Assembly: GCA_964057225.1 (NCBI GenBank)
Contig: OZ059899.1
Location: forward strand, 7,440,001 to 7,504,000
Length of the DNA: 64,000 nt
Origin: Auanema rhodensis
Taxonomy: Eukaryota > Animalia > Nematoda
Direction: 5' to 3'
Shown here: positions 34,276 through 53,800 of the stretch, piece after piece
Layout: every line of letters starts with the position of its first letter
Numbering within the stretch: position 1 is the first letter of the stretch
Position numbers and translations under genes: made by a program
Notes under the pieces: generated by a model
What the model was told of the DNA's origin: nothing
Database searches by the model: none
The model's input: only the letters and a program-made list of their open reading frames with translations

Positions 34276-35473
34276 ATGCCACGAGTTGATAAAGGTGTGT
34301 TCTTTTTCATATTTGTTAAAATATAAAATAATTTGAAACATTTCAGGATTACGGACTAGCTACTTGTTGCGCCAAATAGTTGAAGGAGATTGTCCATACA
34401 CAGATAGTCGTGAATCAGAAACTGAGCTATCGCCTACGTTACAAAAAGCTAAATTTTACCGTGTGTATTACAACTAAAACAAAATCAAAAATTGATATAT
34501 TTTTAGCCATAAATCCATATCATCGTGAACGAATTAAAGATTATGGAACTTCTAGACGCAAGTTTACATCGCATGGTATGCGGTCATCATCTTCAGAACA
34601 TTTAAAATCTTCTCGACGTATAAGGTATCAATATTGTAATTTTGAAATGATAATGATATAAATCAAAAATCGTAGATGGAATCAGTCTGGAGATAGTATC
34701 AGAACATATTCTCCTGAATATCTCAGGCCTCATAGTGTTGACTATTTATCAAAAGGTGATAATTTAATTGTTTCCGTTAGCTTCAATTTTTATTTAAATC
34801 CTTAGAAAAAAGAATAAATAGTTCTAAAAAAAATATCGGAAAAAGGCCTGAAAGTTTAGTTAGGTAAGTATACATATACATATGTTATTGAAGCCGTCAT
34901 ATTAAAGAAAAAGCAGAAGTGAAGACAAAATGCGAAAAGAAGAAGAGGTTAGAACAAAACGTGAAATTAGTGCAGAGCGCAAAAAAACAGAGTTGATGAA
35001 ACTTCGCCAAGAAGAAAAACGACGTCGATCCCGGAACAATACCGCTAAACAACGAGATTCTCGAGAAAATAACAACTTCGCCGGTTTTTACAGGAAAACA
35101 GAAACGAGCAAAGCAACATCTAATAGAAAACTGATGAAGAGTTATAGTAATGGCAATCTGAATAACTCAAAAGATAACAATGTAAGTCAAAGTATAAACA
35201 AAAAAAATTGCAATAGTTTTAAATTATCAATTTTCATTTTCACTTAAGTTTCAGAACAAAATCAAAAGAAAGAGTCTCAATCGATCAAACTCTATCAGTG
35301 ACATCTATTTTCAGAAACCTAAACACTCAAATATAACCAAAGTACGTAATATTAAATGATAAAGATTAATGTCTTTTCAGGTTAAAAAGCCTGTATGGAA
35401 CTACGTCGGAGATCCAACTCGAAAAGCCTTTAATACTAAATCACACCACCTAAAATCTGATTTTTACTTTTAA
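34276..35473 (+). CDS. Unknown basic, Ser/Arg/Lys-rich protein with a short coiled coil (~290 aa, 8 exons)
   Basis: Frame-consistent GT-AG splicing from MPRVDKGLRTSYLLRQ, through MRKEEEVRTKREISAERKK, to VKKPVWNYVGDPTRKAFNTKSHHLKSDFYF*. Confidence 0.7.
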
Positions 35474-35655
35474 ATATGATGACTAACTTATTTTGAGAGT
35501 ATTTATCAGCTAGTCCAAGTTAAACATAACATTACGAAACAATGTTCTAATCAATATTTCGAATAAAGCAACACAATAAACCATTTATATTTATAATATA
35601 AGAGGAACAATGGTATATTAATACAGAAATGATTAGTTAATTGGCTAAATACAAT

Positions 35656-36009
35656 TTAGATGAACTGCTCGGCCCATTCATTCAAGCAATTAAAAGCATT
35701 GGTGGCATGCTGCTTGGTAACACCGGCATTATCCTTTAATAAAAAAAGTTGGAGAATTCAAAATATAACAAACCTTCAAAAACGATTTAAACGAATCCTC
35801 ATCTCTTCTTAAAAGAAGAAACTGTCCGAAGAGGACGTCAGCCTTAATAAATAGTTTGAAAAAGAACATCAATTTTTACGACAAACTTTGTCAAAACCCT
35901 TCTCACTAAGCTTTTCTCCATATGTTGGACCAATACCAGCAATGGATGTAACCTCCTTGTCACCCATTGGCTCAGATACAAATTCACGATGTTTTACAGA
36001 GGTAGACAT
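35656..36009 (-). CDS. baf-1: Barrier-to-autointegration factor, diverged paralogue (89 aa, 3 exons)
   Basis: [89 protein letters not shown]; ORF and splice sites intact. Confidence 0.9.
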
Positions 36010-36160
36010 TCTGAAACGATCAACGTGAATACAATCTTTAAAAAGGTAACTATATGAAACTTAAACAGAAAATGGAAGATTGATACTACTGACACCAGCA
36101 CGAGAAAATACGATAATGAGACGTGTTTTCAGGAGACGAATTTATTGCTAAGTTTCATAA

Positions 36161-36486
36161 TAATGGCAATCTGAATAACTCAAAAGATAACAATGTAAGT
36201 CAAAGTATAAACAAAAAAAATTGCAATAGTTTTAAATTATCAATTTTCATTTTCACTTAAGTTTCAGAACAAAATCAAAAGAAAGAGTCTCAATCGATCA
36301 AACTCTATCAGTGACATCTATTTTCAGAAACCTAAACACTCAAATATAACCAAAGTACGTAATATTAAATGATAAAGATTAATGTCTTTTCAGGTTAAAA
36401 AGCCTGTTTGGAACTACGTCGGAGATCCAACTCGAAAAGCCTTTAATACTAAATCACACCACCTAAAATCTGATTTTTACTTTTAA
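36161..36486 (+). pseudogene. Duplicated 3' exons of the 34276-35473 gene (orphan fragment or alternative last exons)
   Basis: Identical to 35148-35473 except one synonymous change (GTA/GTT); it has no 5' exons of its own. Confidence 0.75.
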
Positions 36487-36668
36487 ATATGATGACTAAC
36501 TTATTTTGAGAGTATTTATCAGCTAGTCCAAGTTAAACATAACATTACGAAACAATGTTCTAATCAATATTTCGAATAAAGCAACACAATAAACCATTTA
36601 TATTTATAATATAAGAGGAACAATGGTATATTAATACAGAAATGATTAGTTAATTGGCTAAATACAAT

Positions 36669-37022
36669 TTAGATGAACTGCTCGGCCCATTCATTCAAGC
36701 AATTAAAAGCATTGGTGGCATGCTGCTTGGTAACACCGGCATTATCCTTTAATAAAAAAAGTTGGAGAATTCAAAATATAACAAACCTTCAACCACGATA
36801 TAAACAAATCCTCATCTTTTCTTAAAAGAAGAAACTGTCCGAAGAGGACGTAAGCCTTAATAAATAGTTTGAAAAAGAACATCAATTTTTACGACAAACT
36901 TTGTCAAAACCCTTGTCACTAAGCTTTTCTCCATATGTTGGACCAATACCAGCAATGGATGTAACCTCCTTGTCACCCATTGGCTCAGATACAAATTCAC
37001 GATGTTTTACAGAGGTAGACAT
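36669..37022 (-). CDS. baf-1: Barrier-to-autointegration factor, canonical copy (89 aa, 3 exons)
   Basis: [89 protein letters not shown]; colinear with human and C. elegans BAF. Confidence 0.97.
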
Positions 37023-37331
37023 TCTGAAACGATCAACATGAATACAATCTTTAAAAAGGTAACTATATGAAATTTAAACAGAAAATGGAAGATTGATACT
37101 ACTGACACCAGCACAAGAAAATACGATAATGAGACGTCTTTTAAAGAGAAGATCTTTTCGCGCCTTTCTCTATGATTTCATGCGCTAACTGAAGGACTGA
37201 CGCAACATAGGTGCAAATGGCGCCTTTCAAATAAAATTTTGAATACTTGATTGTGAAGGTTCTGACTAAAGCTTCTTCTCTGTTTTCCAAATCCCGGATT
37301 TTTCAAATACCTACGTTTTTAATTTTTATTT
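37023..37331. promoter_or_regulatory. Bidirectional promoter with E2F-like and CHR-like motifs
   Basis: About 310 bp between divergent ATGs; TTTCGCGC at 37156-37163, GGCGCC, and TTTCAAA/TTTGAA motifs typical of DREAM-regulated promoters. Confidence 0.5.
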
Positions 37332-46276: not shown

Positions 46277-47598
46277 TCAAATTTTTTGCAGCTTGAGCAT
46301 CTTCCGAAGCATTTTTTTTCTCATTCTTCTTTCAAACTTCGCAAAATCATGAAGTTTCTCATGGGCGTTATAAACATCTGATGGCTGAGGGAATTGATTG
46401 AAGTTAAAGCTTGGTGCATCAGTTGGTAGAACATTTGTCGTAGTTATGTAGGCCGACTCTGTGGTTGCATCTGTTTGAGCAGGTGAGATATATGCGGATT
46501 GAGAAGAGGTTTGAGTAGGTTGAGGAGGTGCTGGAGCGAACATATCACTAAGAATGCTTTGAACACCACAGTCAGAAGGACAATAGCTAGAAGGCATTCC
46601 TGGATCTCCTGGAGGTCCGAAGCTTCCTTCCTGGCCTGCATGTCCAGCTTTTCCAGTTTGCCCAATTGGTCCCGTTGGCCCAGTAGGACCTGGATTTCCG
46701 GGAGCATTGGAGTTTTTGCCTGCTGGTCCCGGTCTTCCTTTCATTCCTTGAGGTCCTGGGGGTCCGATAGGTCCTTTGATACCAATTCCAGCAATAACGG
46801 TATCTCCTTCTGGCCCCTTCGCACCGACTGGACCCTGTACTCCTGGTTCACCGGGGAAACCGTTGTGTCCATGTGGTCCATCCATTCCCATGCTTCCGTC
46901 AGGTCCTCCATGTCCTGGCATACCAGGATATCCTTGCATTCCTCTTTCTCCTTGAGATCCTCTAGGACCGGGTGGTCCAGCTGGACAGATAACACATGGA
47001 AGCTCCTGCTCTGCCTCGAGTTGAATATCGTATCCATCATCACCAGCCTGAATTGAAATTTATTCTAAACGACCATTCGGGATTGAATATACCATTCCTG
47101 GTCGACCTGGTTCTCCTGGAATACCATCAGTACCAGGTAAACCTTGAGGGCCTGGCATTCCCATAGGACAAGCCAATTGAAAGCATCCTTTACAGAAACC
47201 ATATTCTAATGGGTTGTCACGTTTTCTGCGAGAAAACATTAAAATATCTGAAGCTGGAACATTTTCTCTGCTTGACATTATTTGTCTCCAGAGAAAATTA
47301 GAAGATACCTAAAAGAAACATTGTTATATGACGGATTAAGTAGTTCTGAGATGCATTCTCTATGAAACATCATGTCATCGTCGTAAGGGAGAGCCCCAAA
47401 CAACAGATTTAGCTATTAATAAAATGGAAAAAAACAATGATATACCTTGTAATTAACTGAAAGAAGTTCAACATCTCGTTGGTGTAAGTTAATACGATCA
47501 TAGAGAGTAGGAATCGTAAATAATAACCCAATGAGTGTTATGGATGAAACAGTTAATGAAAAATTGGCTAATTTATAATAAAACACATTAGTGTCCAT
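46277..47598 (-). CDS. Cuticle collagen (DPY-2-like cysteine pattern), 3 exons
   Basis: N-terminal TM/Col_cuticle_N domain, furin site RRKR, CKGCFQLACP, ELPCVICPAGPPG, Gly-X-Y blocks, YCPSDCGV, and a long S/T-rich then basic tail. Confidence 0.95.
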
Positions 47599-48184
47599 TT
47601 CTGAAAAACAAAATATATCCAATAGATTAGAATAAAATATGAATAAAGAATAAAAATAATATTATATGCCTCAAATATATATTTATAAAATTAAGAAAAA
47701 AAAACTATTCGAAAAATCTGAAATTTATAAGAAAGAAAAAGTGACAATATTAGGATGTCTTCAACATTTATATCCCAACTTTTTTCAAGTAGGACAGCAC
47801 GGTTGGATAAAAACATGTTCTAAATTTCTAACGTTATTATCTCATCGTGGTAACGGTGCTTTCAAAATCCATTAGGTACATCTCCCAAATTGCGACAACG
47901 TTTCATTAGATGATTTCTGATTCAGGTCAAGGCGCTTTTTGTAACAGAACCTAACTGAGATAAAAAGTCAGCCATAGCTATTTGAAATGAATATTAGGAC
48001 ACATTTAGAAGAATGAACTATTAATGAACCATGTAAAAAACTGTAATACCGTCGAAGGAAGAAATAAAATGTTCCAATTAGGATAAAGTCATCGGATTTC
48101 ATTTGAGGAAATATCGTTGACACTACACTTCATGCCATCTAATGATAGCTAATAGTAGATATCTTTAATTAATTAAAAAATAAC

Positions 48185-48188
<4 letters not shown>

Positions 48189-48222
<34 letters not shown>
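48189..48222. repeat. (TA)n microsatellite
   Basis: Direct reading. Confidence 0.92.
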
Positions 48223-48227
<5 letters not shown>

Positions 48228-49009
48228 ATTTTTAACATAGAAAACAGTTTGTTATTATTATTATATGAATTTTGTACCTTTTATATACGGATACTAAGCA
48301 AAAACAATGCTCCTTTATATGTTATATGTTTAAATATTTTAATAAAAACAATTTAATTGAATGTTAGATTAATATTATTCTATGATTTATACTTTATATT
48401 AATCAATATAAATATAATTAGAATTATATCATTAGAAGCTGATATGATATCTGAATATGTTTATATTCGTAGAAGAAATGAGCTTTTAAAGAAGAACATA
48501 TTGATTTTGAAAAGCTGTATATTTTCATTTTTCCCTTAAAATTATAATAATTTGTATGCTATATCTTTCATATTTTTATGTTAACATTTATTCATTTTAT
48601 GAAAGAATATTGAAAAAATGTGAAAATCAATTTCTTTATATAAGTTCATAATATTTCAATTTAACTCGTCATATCAAAAAACTTAATAAGCATTATTTAT
48701 AGAGAAAAATATTCTATAAATTCTATAATAATTTTATTTAATAATAAATTTTAAATATATTATAATTTTAAAAATAATTTAATATATAATAAACTATATA
48801 CATGTATATAATTATAATTAAGGAAAATGAATCACACACATTGATCAGGGTTATACAGACATAATAATTACAAACAATAAAATAAATCTTAATATATTAA
48901 CGAATATTAACAAATATATTTTAAAATAATATTTGCATATATCTTTATTAAATTCAATAGAATTTTTAATATAATATTGTTTAATTTCAATAGTGAAATG
49001 TACATCAAT

Positions 49010-49661
49010 TTATTGATCTTCTAACCATTTTTTTACATCATTTGCTTTTTCTTCATTAGCAACAGTATATAATGAATTCTAAATAAAGAAAGATTCAATT
49101 GTATATTTCAAAGACATAGTTAAAATATGAATTAGGTATAATATGTTATTTTATAAATTTACCTTATAGTTAGAATCTGATAATATGTCATAATCAGATT
49201 TAGTAACCATCATGCTATCCATATCTGATTCCATACTATAAATGATTTTAATTATGAAACTATATTTATATTTTAATAATACCTTGGCATTTTTAAGACA
49301 TTATCTTCTTGAAATGTTCGTATTAATCGTTTATCTGTTGTTTTAAATTCAACACATGATCTTAAATATTAGATTATACAAGAATTTAACAAAGAAAATA
49401 GATAACTGACTTTGTTTTACCAATTTGGGAAAGCTTAAAATGATGCTTAACTATTGGTTCTTCTCCAATTGAATCAAAACAAGCTTAAAAGAAAAGAGAG
49501 ACATATACATATGAAAGATGTAACATACGAGGATCCTGAACCGATTGAGTAGATGATTGAGATTTAGGTGATCCAGTATTTTGACTATCTGTTCGTTTTA
49601 ATAAACTGCATAGTTTTAATCGTTTTCTCAGATCATATTCACTTGTTGATTTCGGTGGCAT
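49010..49661 (-). CDS. Unknown small protein (~140 aa, 5 exons)
   Basis: TTTTCAG acceptor, then MPPKSTSEYDLRKRLKLC...PCFDSIGEEPI...SCVEFKTTDKRLIRTF...NSLYTVANEEKANDVKKWLEDQ*, with frame-consistent GT-AG introns. Confidence 0.7.
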
Positions 49662-50637
49662 TCCTGAAAATTTAATATAAATGTATAATTTAAATAAAAT
49701 TAACAACAAATAATTATATAATAATTAATATAAGTATATTAATTAGTTTTTCAAATATTATTTAGATTGTAGGTGAACAAAGCTCAAAGTATATTGATAA
49801 GAAAAAGTTATGGAAGCCTTAAATTATATTTATATTCTTCACTTATAATGACGTCGTTCAGGCTCTACCCACCCACGTAGGTGATTCTTCTACTTTCATC
49901 AGTTCTAAAAGTGATGAATGAAAGTTGAAGTAAGGAAGGTAGATTCTTTCATTGACGTTAAGCTTTGAATTCTGTTCAAGTATGACAGTATATCTTAAAA
50001 ACAAATACAGTTATAGAATTTTAATAATTTGTAATAAAAAATATTCTTATACATACATATATTATAAAATAAATTATTATTTTTTTAACATTTACGAGAG
50101 TAAACTCAAGCATATTGCTAAAACAATACGCTGTATAAAGCTACGGAAACCTTATAAAAGCTCAGATCGTTTAAAAGGGATAAATTCAAGTTTATTAGTA
50201 TTATTTTAATATATTATATATCAATATATTTAAAACAAAATAGAATATATACTATATTAAACTACAAAAATCACAAAAAAACACATCATGATTTATGTAT
50301 GTTTATTGGAATATTTTGAACTTCGTAAGAATGAAATTAAATTAACAAAAAAAGTTTTATTCAATTTATATTAATTTTTGAAATAACTAAGATTGAAAAG
50401 TAAAACATTATATATACTTTATTATAAATAATTATAATAATTGTATTATTATTATTATTATTATATAAATAAAAAAATATAAGACAACAATTGTCTTTAA
50501 TATATTAAAATATTAAAAAAAATATAAAGAGGAGTTAATGATGAATGAGAGTAAATTGTCACCATAACAACGATTAACAGATATCTCTCTTGAGTTGTTA
50601 CTGAGCTCATAAGAGAGGAAAGTGACGGAAATTTATT

Positions 50638-50871
50638 TCATCCCAATGGGAAGTATTTAGCTTTATACATATACATATGTTTATATATAATTTTTATTAT
50701 TAAAGTTATGTTAAATTTACTAAATAATTATATTTCATATTATAATTATAATTATTAAAAATTAAATAAATATATAATCTTACTGTGAGGACCATCCTGT
50801 CCGAGTAACACTTCTCTAGCTTTATTACTGAATCCTCTATGTGGAGCAATAATTGCGCTATCATCAGCCAT
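50638..50871 (-). CDS. Candidate 36-aa micropeptide (2 exons)
   Basis: CTTTACAG|C ATG; exon 50871-50784; GTAAG donor; exon 50660-50638. Product MADDSAIIAPHRGFSNKAREVLLGQDGPHTKYFPLG*. Confidence 0.5.
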
Positions 50872-53800
50872 GCTGTAAAGACGAAAGATTTTCCGATAAG
50901 AAAGACAAAAATAAAAAAAAACAGGAAGATAAAGTTTGATAAATAAAAATATTATAAATAGAATATATTATAATAAATCTTTTTGATATATTTAGTATTA
51001 AGAAGAAGAATGATGACGTTATTTATCTAAAAATAACATATATTAGTATATTAACTATAAGAAAAGAAAACCAGAAATATCAAATGATAATCTGCTTTTC
51101 ATTCTTAGGATTAATCCGAAGTTTTATCAATAGAGCAAGAGGATAATGGTTGATGATGATGACGATGAAGTTCATTTGGTTACATTTATGTTTGAAGGAA
51201 AAGTAGAAAGTAGAAAATAGAAACCTAATAATCTATATAATATATGAATGATGATTCTATATTTTCACATAGTTATATATAATATAGTAATAGAAACCGA
51301 AAAAAAAATTATGAAAAAGGAATAGTATACTATGTGTATTCATATATATGAATCTCTAATAAATACTAACTTATATTTATTTTTTTTTCACTAAAAAAAA
51401 GTTTATAAAATTTTGATTAATATACAAATATTATAAATATAATCAATATTCATAATAAAAGATAGAATACATGAAATGTACTAAAATTCTTCAGTGCAAA
51501 ATGATTTAATGATAGTCAAAATTTCTAAGTTTTAATTATACGTTTCTGATACAACAATGCTATTCAATATTTCATTTATAAAACAAAGTTTCCTTATATA
51601 ATCTACTTTTCAAATATATTCTAAACAAGATATTATAATAATTTATTTTATTATTTGTATAAAGAATACATAAATAATTATAAAAAAAGTATTTGAAATG
51701 AGCATCGATATTAACTAAAAAAAAAAAAAGAAAGAAAAAGTTATAGATAGATAGATATGGTGATAGCCTGAAGATAGAGAAATTCAAAAAAAAAAGAAAG
51801 AAAAGATAAAAACAGTGATTAGAGACGTAGAGGTTATATAGACTAATTTTATTTATTATATAAATAAATAAATAAATTTATTTATTAATTTATATAATAT
51901 AATTATTATTAATATACATACAATACAAATATATATATTATGAATTAAAAATGAAATATATATTCTATATACTTATGAATATAAATAAGAAAAAATATAA
52001 AAATAAATGACATTTAATGTTGTATATCCTATTATTTAACTTTCATATATACATATGTTTCATAATCATAAAACAATCAAGAATACGGTGTTATATAATA
52101 GATTAACAAATCTGTAAGAAATATCAGAAACTTAACGTGAATACAAATTTTTTTTGGATACAGATTTATGAAATTTACTGCTAATTTTATGTTATTTATA
52201 TAGAATAATGTTCATTTTAGATTCTTTATATTATTAGAAATCTTGATGAATATGACAATCTCTTCATCAGTAGTGTTACGACACTTAACGTTTTGATTAG
52301 TTATGAATAGATATCAATTACGCTCAAAGTCCAAATAAATCCAGAATCCAACTAAACTTCAAATTTCTAAAACATTTACTTATATTTAAATATATAAATA
52401 TATACATTGAAAAGGACAAAGCTTTTCATTGTATTTTTATAAAGAAGAAAAATATTCGATTATTTCAAAAAGATTAAATATTAACATTGGAATTGAGTTC
52501 TATTTTATGTTATTTTATACGAATGATATAGTATTTCTCGTTGATTATACTATTCATATGCGAGATTATTGATATCTTCCCTGTTCATTTATTACATTAC
52601 AGAACAAAATAAAATATTTATCATATATAAATGAATATAAATCCATTTATGTATTTGAAAAGTTTCAATATTTTTAGATATTTGATGAATATTTGAAAAT
52701 TATCAAAAGGAAATGGTTGATAAACTGAATAATATAGATTATAAATATCTTAAATGTATATCATAGTTATTGAAAACTGAGTTATTTGTGAAGAGGAAAA
52801 TCTTAAAATAGAAGAAGATCTGACATAATTTAAAAAGCAAAATTATGAAAATGATTTGATAAACATAGTTTATGTAAAATATCTTTTCTTGGAGCTTCTT
52901 CAACTATCGAAATTTGCATATACATTCTTTTCCAATTTTAGCTGAGAAGGTTTGAACTGATAATTAAAAAAGTCGGTTTGTATTTCAAAGATTCTAAACG
53001 ACTTAAATCAGAATTTATTTTCAAAGCTTTGATAACAATGCTGAGAAATCCATATATTTCTATAGTTCACTTCAATCTTCATGTTTTATACTTCCTCACC
53101 TCAGTCGCATGAGCTTCATCGTATTTTTACATGTTTCTAAGGATTTCGATATTCACAAAACATTTGTTGATTTCATACAATTTTTTGTATATTATTTGAT
53201 ATATTAGGTCTCAAACTTAATTCTGCCCCCCCCCCCCTAGAGTACCATGAAAAAAAATAAGTAAAAGTATGAATTTTGAAAAAAAATTTATATTATACTA
53301 TATTTCCCTTCAAACTTCTCCCACTCTTTTTCAGCTGTCGGATTCCCTTCATGAAAAATATTTGACTTTTAGATGAAAAAATATTTTACAAAACATTGAA
53401 CTAATCTTCATCTTCGGTAATCTGTTGGAGCTAGATGAGTAGAATAAGGGGGTGGGGTGTTCAAAACTGTCCAGCCCAGCCCCTGAAGCGTCTGCTGGCT
53501 CTAAAACGAGAATACCATCTAATGCTTTAAACTGGAGACAAATATCCATATACAGCCTTCATATTTCGGAAGGCTGCTTTCGCAAACAAGAGACAAACAA
53601 AAAAAGTTGGTCAATTGTAATTAATTTTTGAAAAAAAAAAGAATTTCTTTTTTGAAAGTTTTTTTTAATAGTTTTTTATATGCAAATTCCGTTAGTTTAC
53701 ATATGCTCCACATACAGTCCTGAGGAATCTCTGAAAGTAGGATAGAGCAAGTTTTTGAAAAAATAGAAAACTTTACTAGAAATAAGAGTGACCTATTCTT

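Follow-up and report, generated by a model that had tools for sequence, protein, structure and literature searches.

Two complete BAF genes lie in tandem on the minus strand of the 64,000-nt stretch of nematode DNA analysed here (hereafter the window), and the left one (copy 1) may be a young paralogue that is diverging non-neutrally in helices alpha3-alpha4, with its DNA binding kept and its LEM groove predicted to be weakened. This reading, drawn from sequence comparison, is put forward tentatively, and early decay of a redundant copy is an almost equally probable explanation. The essential protein BAF, small and highly conserved, holds the chromosomes together in one nucleus and recruits LEM-domain membrane proteins; to our knowledge, only engineered mutants, L58R among them, have separated its functions to date. 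A naturally occurring paralogue altering L58 and W62 while sparing the DNA- and lamin-binding surfaces would be an evolutionary experiment on the BAF-LEM link, and would show how an essential single-copy gene begins its sub- or neo-functionalisation.

Self-comparison of the window returned a single gapless direct repeat of 993 nt (35144-36136 versus 36157-37149, offset 1013) with 15 mismatches, 4 of them crowded into the terminal few bases. The clean repeat unit comprises 977 nt with 11 differences between its two occurrences (Table 1), and in this respect the figures of the preliminary description were reproduced exactly. The duplicated stretch starts partway through an exon of a convergent + strand gene, whose last exons (35148 onward) fall within it, and extends to a point some 115-127 nt upstream of the BAF ATG. 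The left unit holds the 3' exons of this + strand gene, intergenic DNA, the derived BAF gene and approximately 115 nt of BAF 5' flank, and the right unit runs on into the native upstream region. The left BAF copy keeps only those 115-127 nt of native 5' flank, beyond which come the junction and then the dead fragment of the neighbouring gene. Four of the differences are non-coding with respect to BAF: three in the 5' flank (36025, 36060 and 36102), and one in the 3' flank (35395/36408), some 260 nt 3' of the BAF stop codon and synonymous in the tail of the convergent gene. The preliminary description had seen no difference in the 3' flank, and was wrong on this point.

Several other features of the region may be recorded. 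An AATAAA motif is found on the minus strand of the junction spacer (36147-36142), and a promoterless 3' fragment of the Lys/Arg/Ser-rich neighbour gene sits between both BAF genes (36161-36486). A low-depth RNA contig covers 34907-35134, in the convergent neighbour gene itself. Farther along, a cuticle collagen exon (Pfam PF01391) occupies 46277-46939 on the minus strand, with best matches about 50% identical (Heterorhabditis, Ancylostoma, Haemonchus) and none closer than 54%, in keeping with a clade-V-like rhabditid that lacks near relatives in the protein database, and the G+C content reaches its minimum for the window, just 20%, at 48001-52000.

Table 1. Position of the BAF genes, the repeat units that carry them and the associated features (numbering of the window).
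Feature	Position	Strand	Description
Convergent neighbour gene	34930-35473	+	Lys/Arg/Ser-rich product without Pfam match
Left repeat unit	35148-36124		977 nt, gapless versus right unit, 11 differences
Derived BAF copy (copy 1, left)	35656-36009	-	Complete 3-exon gene, 89 aa
Copy 1 exons	1: 35887-36009; 2: 35774-35842; 3 + stop: 35656-35733	-	
Derived-copy exon 2	35774-35842	-	6 of the 11 differences; 5 within 26 nt (35780-35805)
Junction/spacer	36125-36160		36 nt, poorly matching filler between both units
Right repeat unit	36161-37137		977 nt; ancestral-type BAF, with a dead 3' remnant of the + strand gene
Ancestral-type BAF copy (copy 2, right)	36669-37022	-	Complete 3-exon gene, 89 aa
Copy 2 exons	1: 36900-37022; 2: 36787-36855; 3 + stop: 36669-36746	-	
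RNA contig of run X10	36060-37025	-	882 nt, mean depth 416, spliced copy-2 CDS

The two BAF genes share the same architecture, with three exons (123 nt, 69 nt, and 75 nt followed by the stop codon), introns of 44 and 40 nt bounded by GT..AG, a TTTCAG acceptor placed one base ahead of the ATG, and an intact open reading frame and splice sites. A single gene with repeated or mutually exclusive exons was considered and rejected, as a start codon, a stop codon and an acceptor are all present in each copy. Of the 11 differences, seven fall in the coding sequence, six of them in exon 2, and all seven are replacement changes, with none synonymous and none in the introns, which confirms the pattern first reported for this locus. 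From copy 2 to copy 1, these changes are GAC>GAG (D36E), TAC>GAC (Y43D), AAA>AGA (K54R), TTG>TCG (L58S), ATA>AAA (I60K) and TGG>TTT (W62F, an adjacent GG>TT), so that copy 1 carries E36, D43, R54, S58, K60 and F62. The sites concerned are located at 35780-35805/36793-36818, 35839/36852 and 35902/36915. The proteins are identical at every other position (93% identity overall). Both can be numbered as human BAF, as had been assumed, since the alignment to the human protein (1CI4) is gapless over residues 1-89; the human residues at the six positions are E36, Y43, K54, L58, R60 and W62. Exon 2 of the derived copy encodes helix alpha3, the loop after it and the first part of alpha4.

Expression data come from one run, X10. 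That this run is RNA follows from its 882-nt contig, which skips 36746-36785 and 36855-36898 exactly, and since each skipped segment begins with CT and finishes with AC on the + strand, the RNA is minus-strand. The contig has the copy-2 letters at every variant site, and the right (canonical) copy is abundantly expressed, with both introns removed at the predicted sites. Exon 2 of copy 1 was absent from the contigs of this single run, from which minor variants drop out; the variant is at most a minor RNA species in the X10 sample, which does not prove its absence. The same contig extends about 610 nt past the stop codon of copy 2, through the dead gene fragment and the junction, and ends at 36060, that is 51 nt upstream of the ATG of the left copy. 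This tail suggests either a long 3' UTR or an operon-like read-through towards the left copy.

The polarity of the changes was read from an alignment with 14 outgroup BAFs (other nematodes, plus two other animals). These outgroups generally have Y43, K54, L58 and W62, which places these four changes on the branch of the left copy, while positions 36 and 60 vary among the outgroups, so that D36E and I60K are not polarisable. By this comparison, the right copy is the ancestral one, and the left copy the derived one. Natural variation at the same positions was then estimated from 208 BAF-family domains, found among 1.84 billion representative proteins: tryptophan occupies position 62 in 93% of these domains, tyrosine position 43 in 66%, and leucine position 58 in 46%, many others having K, M, R or A at this last position. 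D36E, K54R and I60K affect naturally variable positions, and E36, R54 and K60 are common in the BAF family. Each of the derived residues of copy 1 can be found somewhere among natural members of the family: for example, F62 is the normal residue in the BAF of Steinernema hermaphroditum, and a BAF-family protein present in Logan has the motif DEDSFKKW, corresponding to S58 with K60, as in copy 1. Copy 1 would thus lie within functional sequence space. The combination of D43, S58 and F62 occurs in none of the 208 domains.

Both products belong to the family, matching Pfam PF02961 (SAM_BAF) over profile positions 1-88 of 88, with 125.1 bits for copy 1 and 132.4 bits for copy 2 (cut-off 25). AlphaFold2 modelling, which the preliminary description had proposed, predicts that copy 1 keeps the five-helix BAF fold, with a TM of 0.95 and an rmsd of 0.9-1.0 A to human BAF (1CI4 and 6GHD); the model has a pLDDT of 95.6, a confidence that is insensitive to point changes and is not counted here as evidence of stability. 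In this model, E36 maps to the end of alpha2, D43 to the start of alpha3, R54 to the alpha3-alpha4 loop, and S58, K60 and F62 to alpha4. The GIG motif (25-27) and K6, which supply the helix-hairpin-helix DNA-binding residues (K6, G25 and G27), and S4, with the N-terminal Ser/Thr phosphosites, are untouched, in agreement with what had been noticed at first, MSTSVKH and GIG being the same in both copies and invariant across the outgroup alignment. G47 is also kept in both copies, and the lamin-contact positions 11, 12, 14, 83 and 86-88 are unchanged in copy 1. No BAF closer than 76% was returned by a search of 5.8 billion proteins, neither 89-aa product had an exact match on record in public assemblies, and a literature search found no described nematode baf-1 duplicate.

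In the crystal structure of the lamin-BAF-emerin complex, the LEM domain contacts R37, F39, Q48, V51, L52, L58, E61 and W62 of BAF (Samson 2018, PMC6212729; PMC6459885). Copy 2 matches the nematode orthologues at those of these positions that the orthologues have in common, and copy 1 differs at two of the eight, 58 and 62. The preliminary description had the changes concentrated on the LEM-binding surface: L58 and W62 are indeed documented contacts (PMC6212729), but a concentration there is less clear, with two of the six changes (L58S and W62F) falling on the eight contact residues (hypergeometric p=0.09). Four of the six belong to the contact set or adjoin it when positions 36 and 60 are included (p=0.018), a grouping made post hoc. 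The first of these residues is the one altered in L58R, correctly described as the standard LEM-binding-null mutant, which abolishes LEM binding and spares DNA binding and dimerisation in human cells; C. elegans baf-1(L58R) worms are viable, with less BAF at the envelope (PMC5638020, PMC10668030). As for Y43, replaced by D in copy 1, it lies on helix alpha3 one helical turn before G47, the centre of the BAF dimer interface (PMC6212729). Its suggested proximity to this interface is read from this position on the helix; no source naming Y43 as an interface residue was found.

Do the changes of the left copy reflect selection or chance? Neutral divergence between the units is about 0.5% (4 differences at 765 sites, of which 710 are non-coding and 55 silent), and the duplicate is young, as had been proposed. 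The coding sequence offers 212 replacement and 55 silent sites, and a ratio of seven replacement to zero silent changes has by itself a p value of 0.20. Compared with the neutral sites, the replacement sites are more often changed (7/212, or 3.3%, versus 4/765; OR 6.5), with p=0.003 if the changes are independent and p=0.009 if the GG>TT pair is taken as a single event; if the five changes in 26 nt result from one complex mutation, three events are left and p rises to 0.18. The differences are also clustered: the chance of finding six of the 11 in an exon of 69 nt is 4e-5 under a binomial, and by a scan statistic computed across the unit, five differences in 27 nt have p=0.004 and six in 69 nt p=0.018. 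No change is seen at the 14 synonymous sites of exon 2, nor in the 84 nt of introns; from arithmetic on the coordinates, the probability that the seven changes skip the 44-nt intron inside their 123-nt span is about 0.05, and that all are replacements about 0.2. Since the locus was picked from a very large scan, nominal p values of about 0.003-0.01 are weak. The positive selection initially claimed retains the excess of replacements under independence and loses it when the patch is counted as one event or the 7:0 ratio is taken alone, and the case for selection on the left copy is suggestive only. RIP-, APOBEC- or deamination-type mutation was considered as a source of the changes and rejected, the mutation spectrum being mixed.

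A pattern of this kind could also arise if two alleles of one gene had been wrongly set in tandem, or if exon 2 contained sequencing errors, near-identical tandem copies being a common assembly error and similar internally repeated BAF gene models being present in other nematode assemblies. The duplication was checked in the Logan contigs of three DNA runs (X1, X2 and X5), from three studies; one of these runs may be the source of the assembly itself, but the three studies nonetheless agree, and every run seems to come from a single species, perhaps from a single strain. Flank contigs stop at 35177 and resume at 37085, and the repeat is represented by one collapsed contig of 954 nt (in two pieces in X5), at depths of 109 versus 60 for the flanks in X1, 93-110 versus 65-68 in X5, and 38 versus 13-16 in X2, corresponding to ratios of about 1.8, 1.4-1.7 and 2.4-3, respectively. 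Each of the three runs also contains, at single-copy depth, a 119-nt contig spanning the junction (36072-36190). This layout is that of the de Bruijn graph expected of a two-copy tandem repeat, and the junction is also crossed by the RNA contig. The collapsed contigs are mosaics of the letters of both copies, with no indels reported; the variant exon-2 patch was recovered in X1 and X5, and the canonical letters in X2 and X10. With a junction contig at 1x and a collapsed repeat at 1.4-3x in three studies, the duplication is real, and the variant letters are not the errors of one assembly; an artefact, which the preliminary description had itself kept in mind, is thus highly improbable. The ratio of X2, higher than those of X1 and X5 (2.4-3 versus about 1.4-1.8), may reflect a different copy number or noise in contig depth. 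Gene models with two to five internally repeated BAF exon blocks are found in Ancylostoma caninum (RCN38680.1), Gongylonema pulchrum and one more nematode, and local duplication (or mis-assembly or mis-annotation) of BAF loci seems to recur in this group. Among genuine duplicates, a tight cluster of differences in a near-identical pair is the usual footprint of short-tract gene conversion, and the exon-2 patch could have been copied from a third, more diverged BAF paralogue located elsewhere in the genome. This origin is improbable too, if slightly less so than an artefact: tblastn detected no third BAF-like sequence within the window, no donor of the patch was found there (the longest match being a chance 12-mer), and a donor diverged enough to bring five residue differences into nine codons would be expected to bring silent differences as well, of which there are none.

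Early decay is a much more serious contender, and may quite possibly be the correct explanation. The left copy would then be redundant, poorly expressed or silent, and free of constraint, accumulating neutral or damaging hits, with the patch arising from one or two multi-nucleotide mutations. The RNA contig with its exclusively canonical letters, and the truncation of the native 5' flank of the left copy, both fit such a fate, as does the nature of Y43D, L58S and W62F, which strike conserved hydrophobic residues (see the frequencies of W62 and Y43 above). The adjacent GG>TT pair and the five changes in 26 nt are typical of clustered mutation, and it is precisely when the patch is taken as one event that significance is lost, the 7:0 ratio being likewise non-significant on its own. 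Against decay, all seven changes avoid synonymous sites and skip the 44-nt intron lying between them, the mutation spectrum is mixed, without a single signature, and every derived residue occurs in natural BAFs. The open reading frame and splice sites are also intact, though this would be expected anyway at such an age. Should the left copy indeed be decaying, the locus is no more than a commonplace illustration of what becomes of tandem duplicates early on.

The tentatively preferred reading, a paralogue diverging non-neutrally, would involve the following steps. In a rhabditid-like nematode, some 1 kb was recently duplicated in tandem, which copied a whole baf-1-type gene together with approximately 115-127 bp of its 5' flank. 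The right copy, with its native upstream region and ancestral protein, presumably carries the essential BAF function, and the left copy took five or six derived replacements in residues 36-62, from the end of alpha2 through alpha3 and the loop to alpha4, and would be a diverging paralogue and not plain junk. Because all residues outside the six changed sites are identical, the left copy should still fold as BAF, and bind DNA and lamin. Its LEM groove would be altered by L58S and W62F, by the neighbouring positions 36 and 60, and by Y43D at the start of the dimerisation helix. BAF acts as a dimer, and its LEM site straddles the interface between the two subunits; variant homodimers would accordingly cross-bridge DNA with a weaker LEM tethering, and heterodimers of variant and canonical BAF would have one impaired LEM half-site. 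A stronger form of this proposal, in which the left copy is an expressed and adaptively evolving BAF that still cross-bridges DNA, has lost most of its LEM binding, and tunes chromatin-membrane tethering, by itself or in heterodimers with canonical BAF, in a particular tissue or sex (the germline, for instance), is unlikely.

Compared with canonical BAF/BANF1 (C. elegans BAF-1; human 1CI4, 2BZF and 6GHD), the left copy has the same length of 89 aa, aligns without gaps, and shares the PF02961 domain and the five-helix fold, but it has D43, S58 and F62, where Y, L (or M/I) and W are found in nearly all BAFs, and adjoins an unaltered sister gene. As in ordinary young tandem duplicates, one copy keeps the ancestral sequence and regulation and the other has a truncated flank and a faster protein change; here, however, a replacement/neutral ratio of about 6 and the clustering in one exon exceed what would be expected of plain relaxed constraint.

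The engineered BAF-L58R, which keeps DNA cross-bridging and loses LEM binding and nuclear-envelope enrichment (PMC5638020, PMC10668030), resembles the left copy in that the same hydrophobic residue of the LEM groove is changed, and the DNA-binding and dimer-centre residues are intact. It differs in that the change seen here is a natural L58S, to a small polar and not a charged residue, accompanied by W62F, Y43D, K54R, I60K and D36E, L58S and W62F being milder changes. The uncoupling from the nuclear envelope proposed in the preliminary description is for this reason less certain, all the more as F62 is normal in S. hermaphroditum BAF, and the roles suggested there (anti-foreign-DNA factor, germline or sperm chromatin compactor, dominant modulator of canonical BAF) are speculative. 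The vertebrate paralogue BAF-L (BANF2) is approximately 40% identical to BAF. Enriched in the testis, it is a proposed BAF regulator, and normal spermiogenesis requires it (PMC8877947; bioRxiv 10.1101/2024.05.16.594580); it does not bind DNA (PMC8877947). The likeness is one of analogy only, a second BAF-family gene in the genome with a diverged interaction surface: BANF2 is old, whereas the left copy is very recent and independent, is 93% identical to its sister, keeps the DNA-contact residues, and is not an orthologue. Were the stronger proposal true, the variant would be a nematode equivalent of vertebrate BAF-L that evolved independently, and BAF would have a separation-of-function allele that arose in nature.
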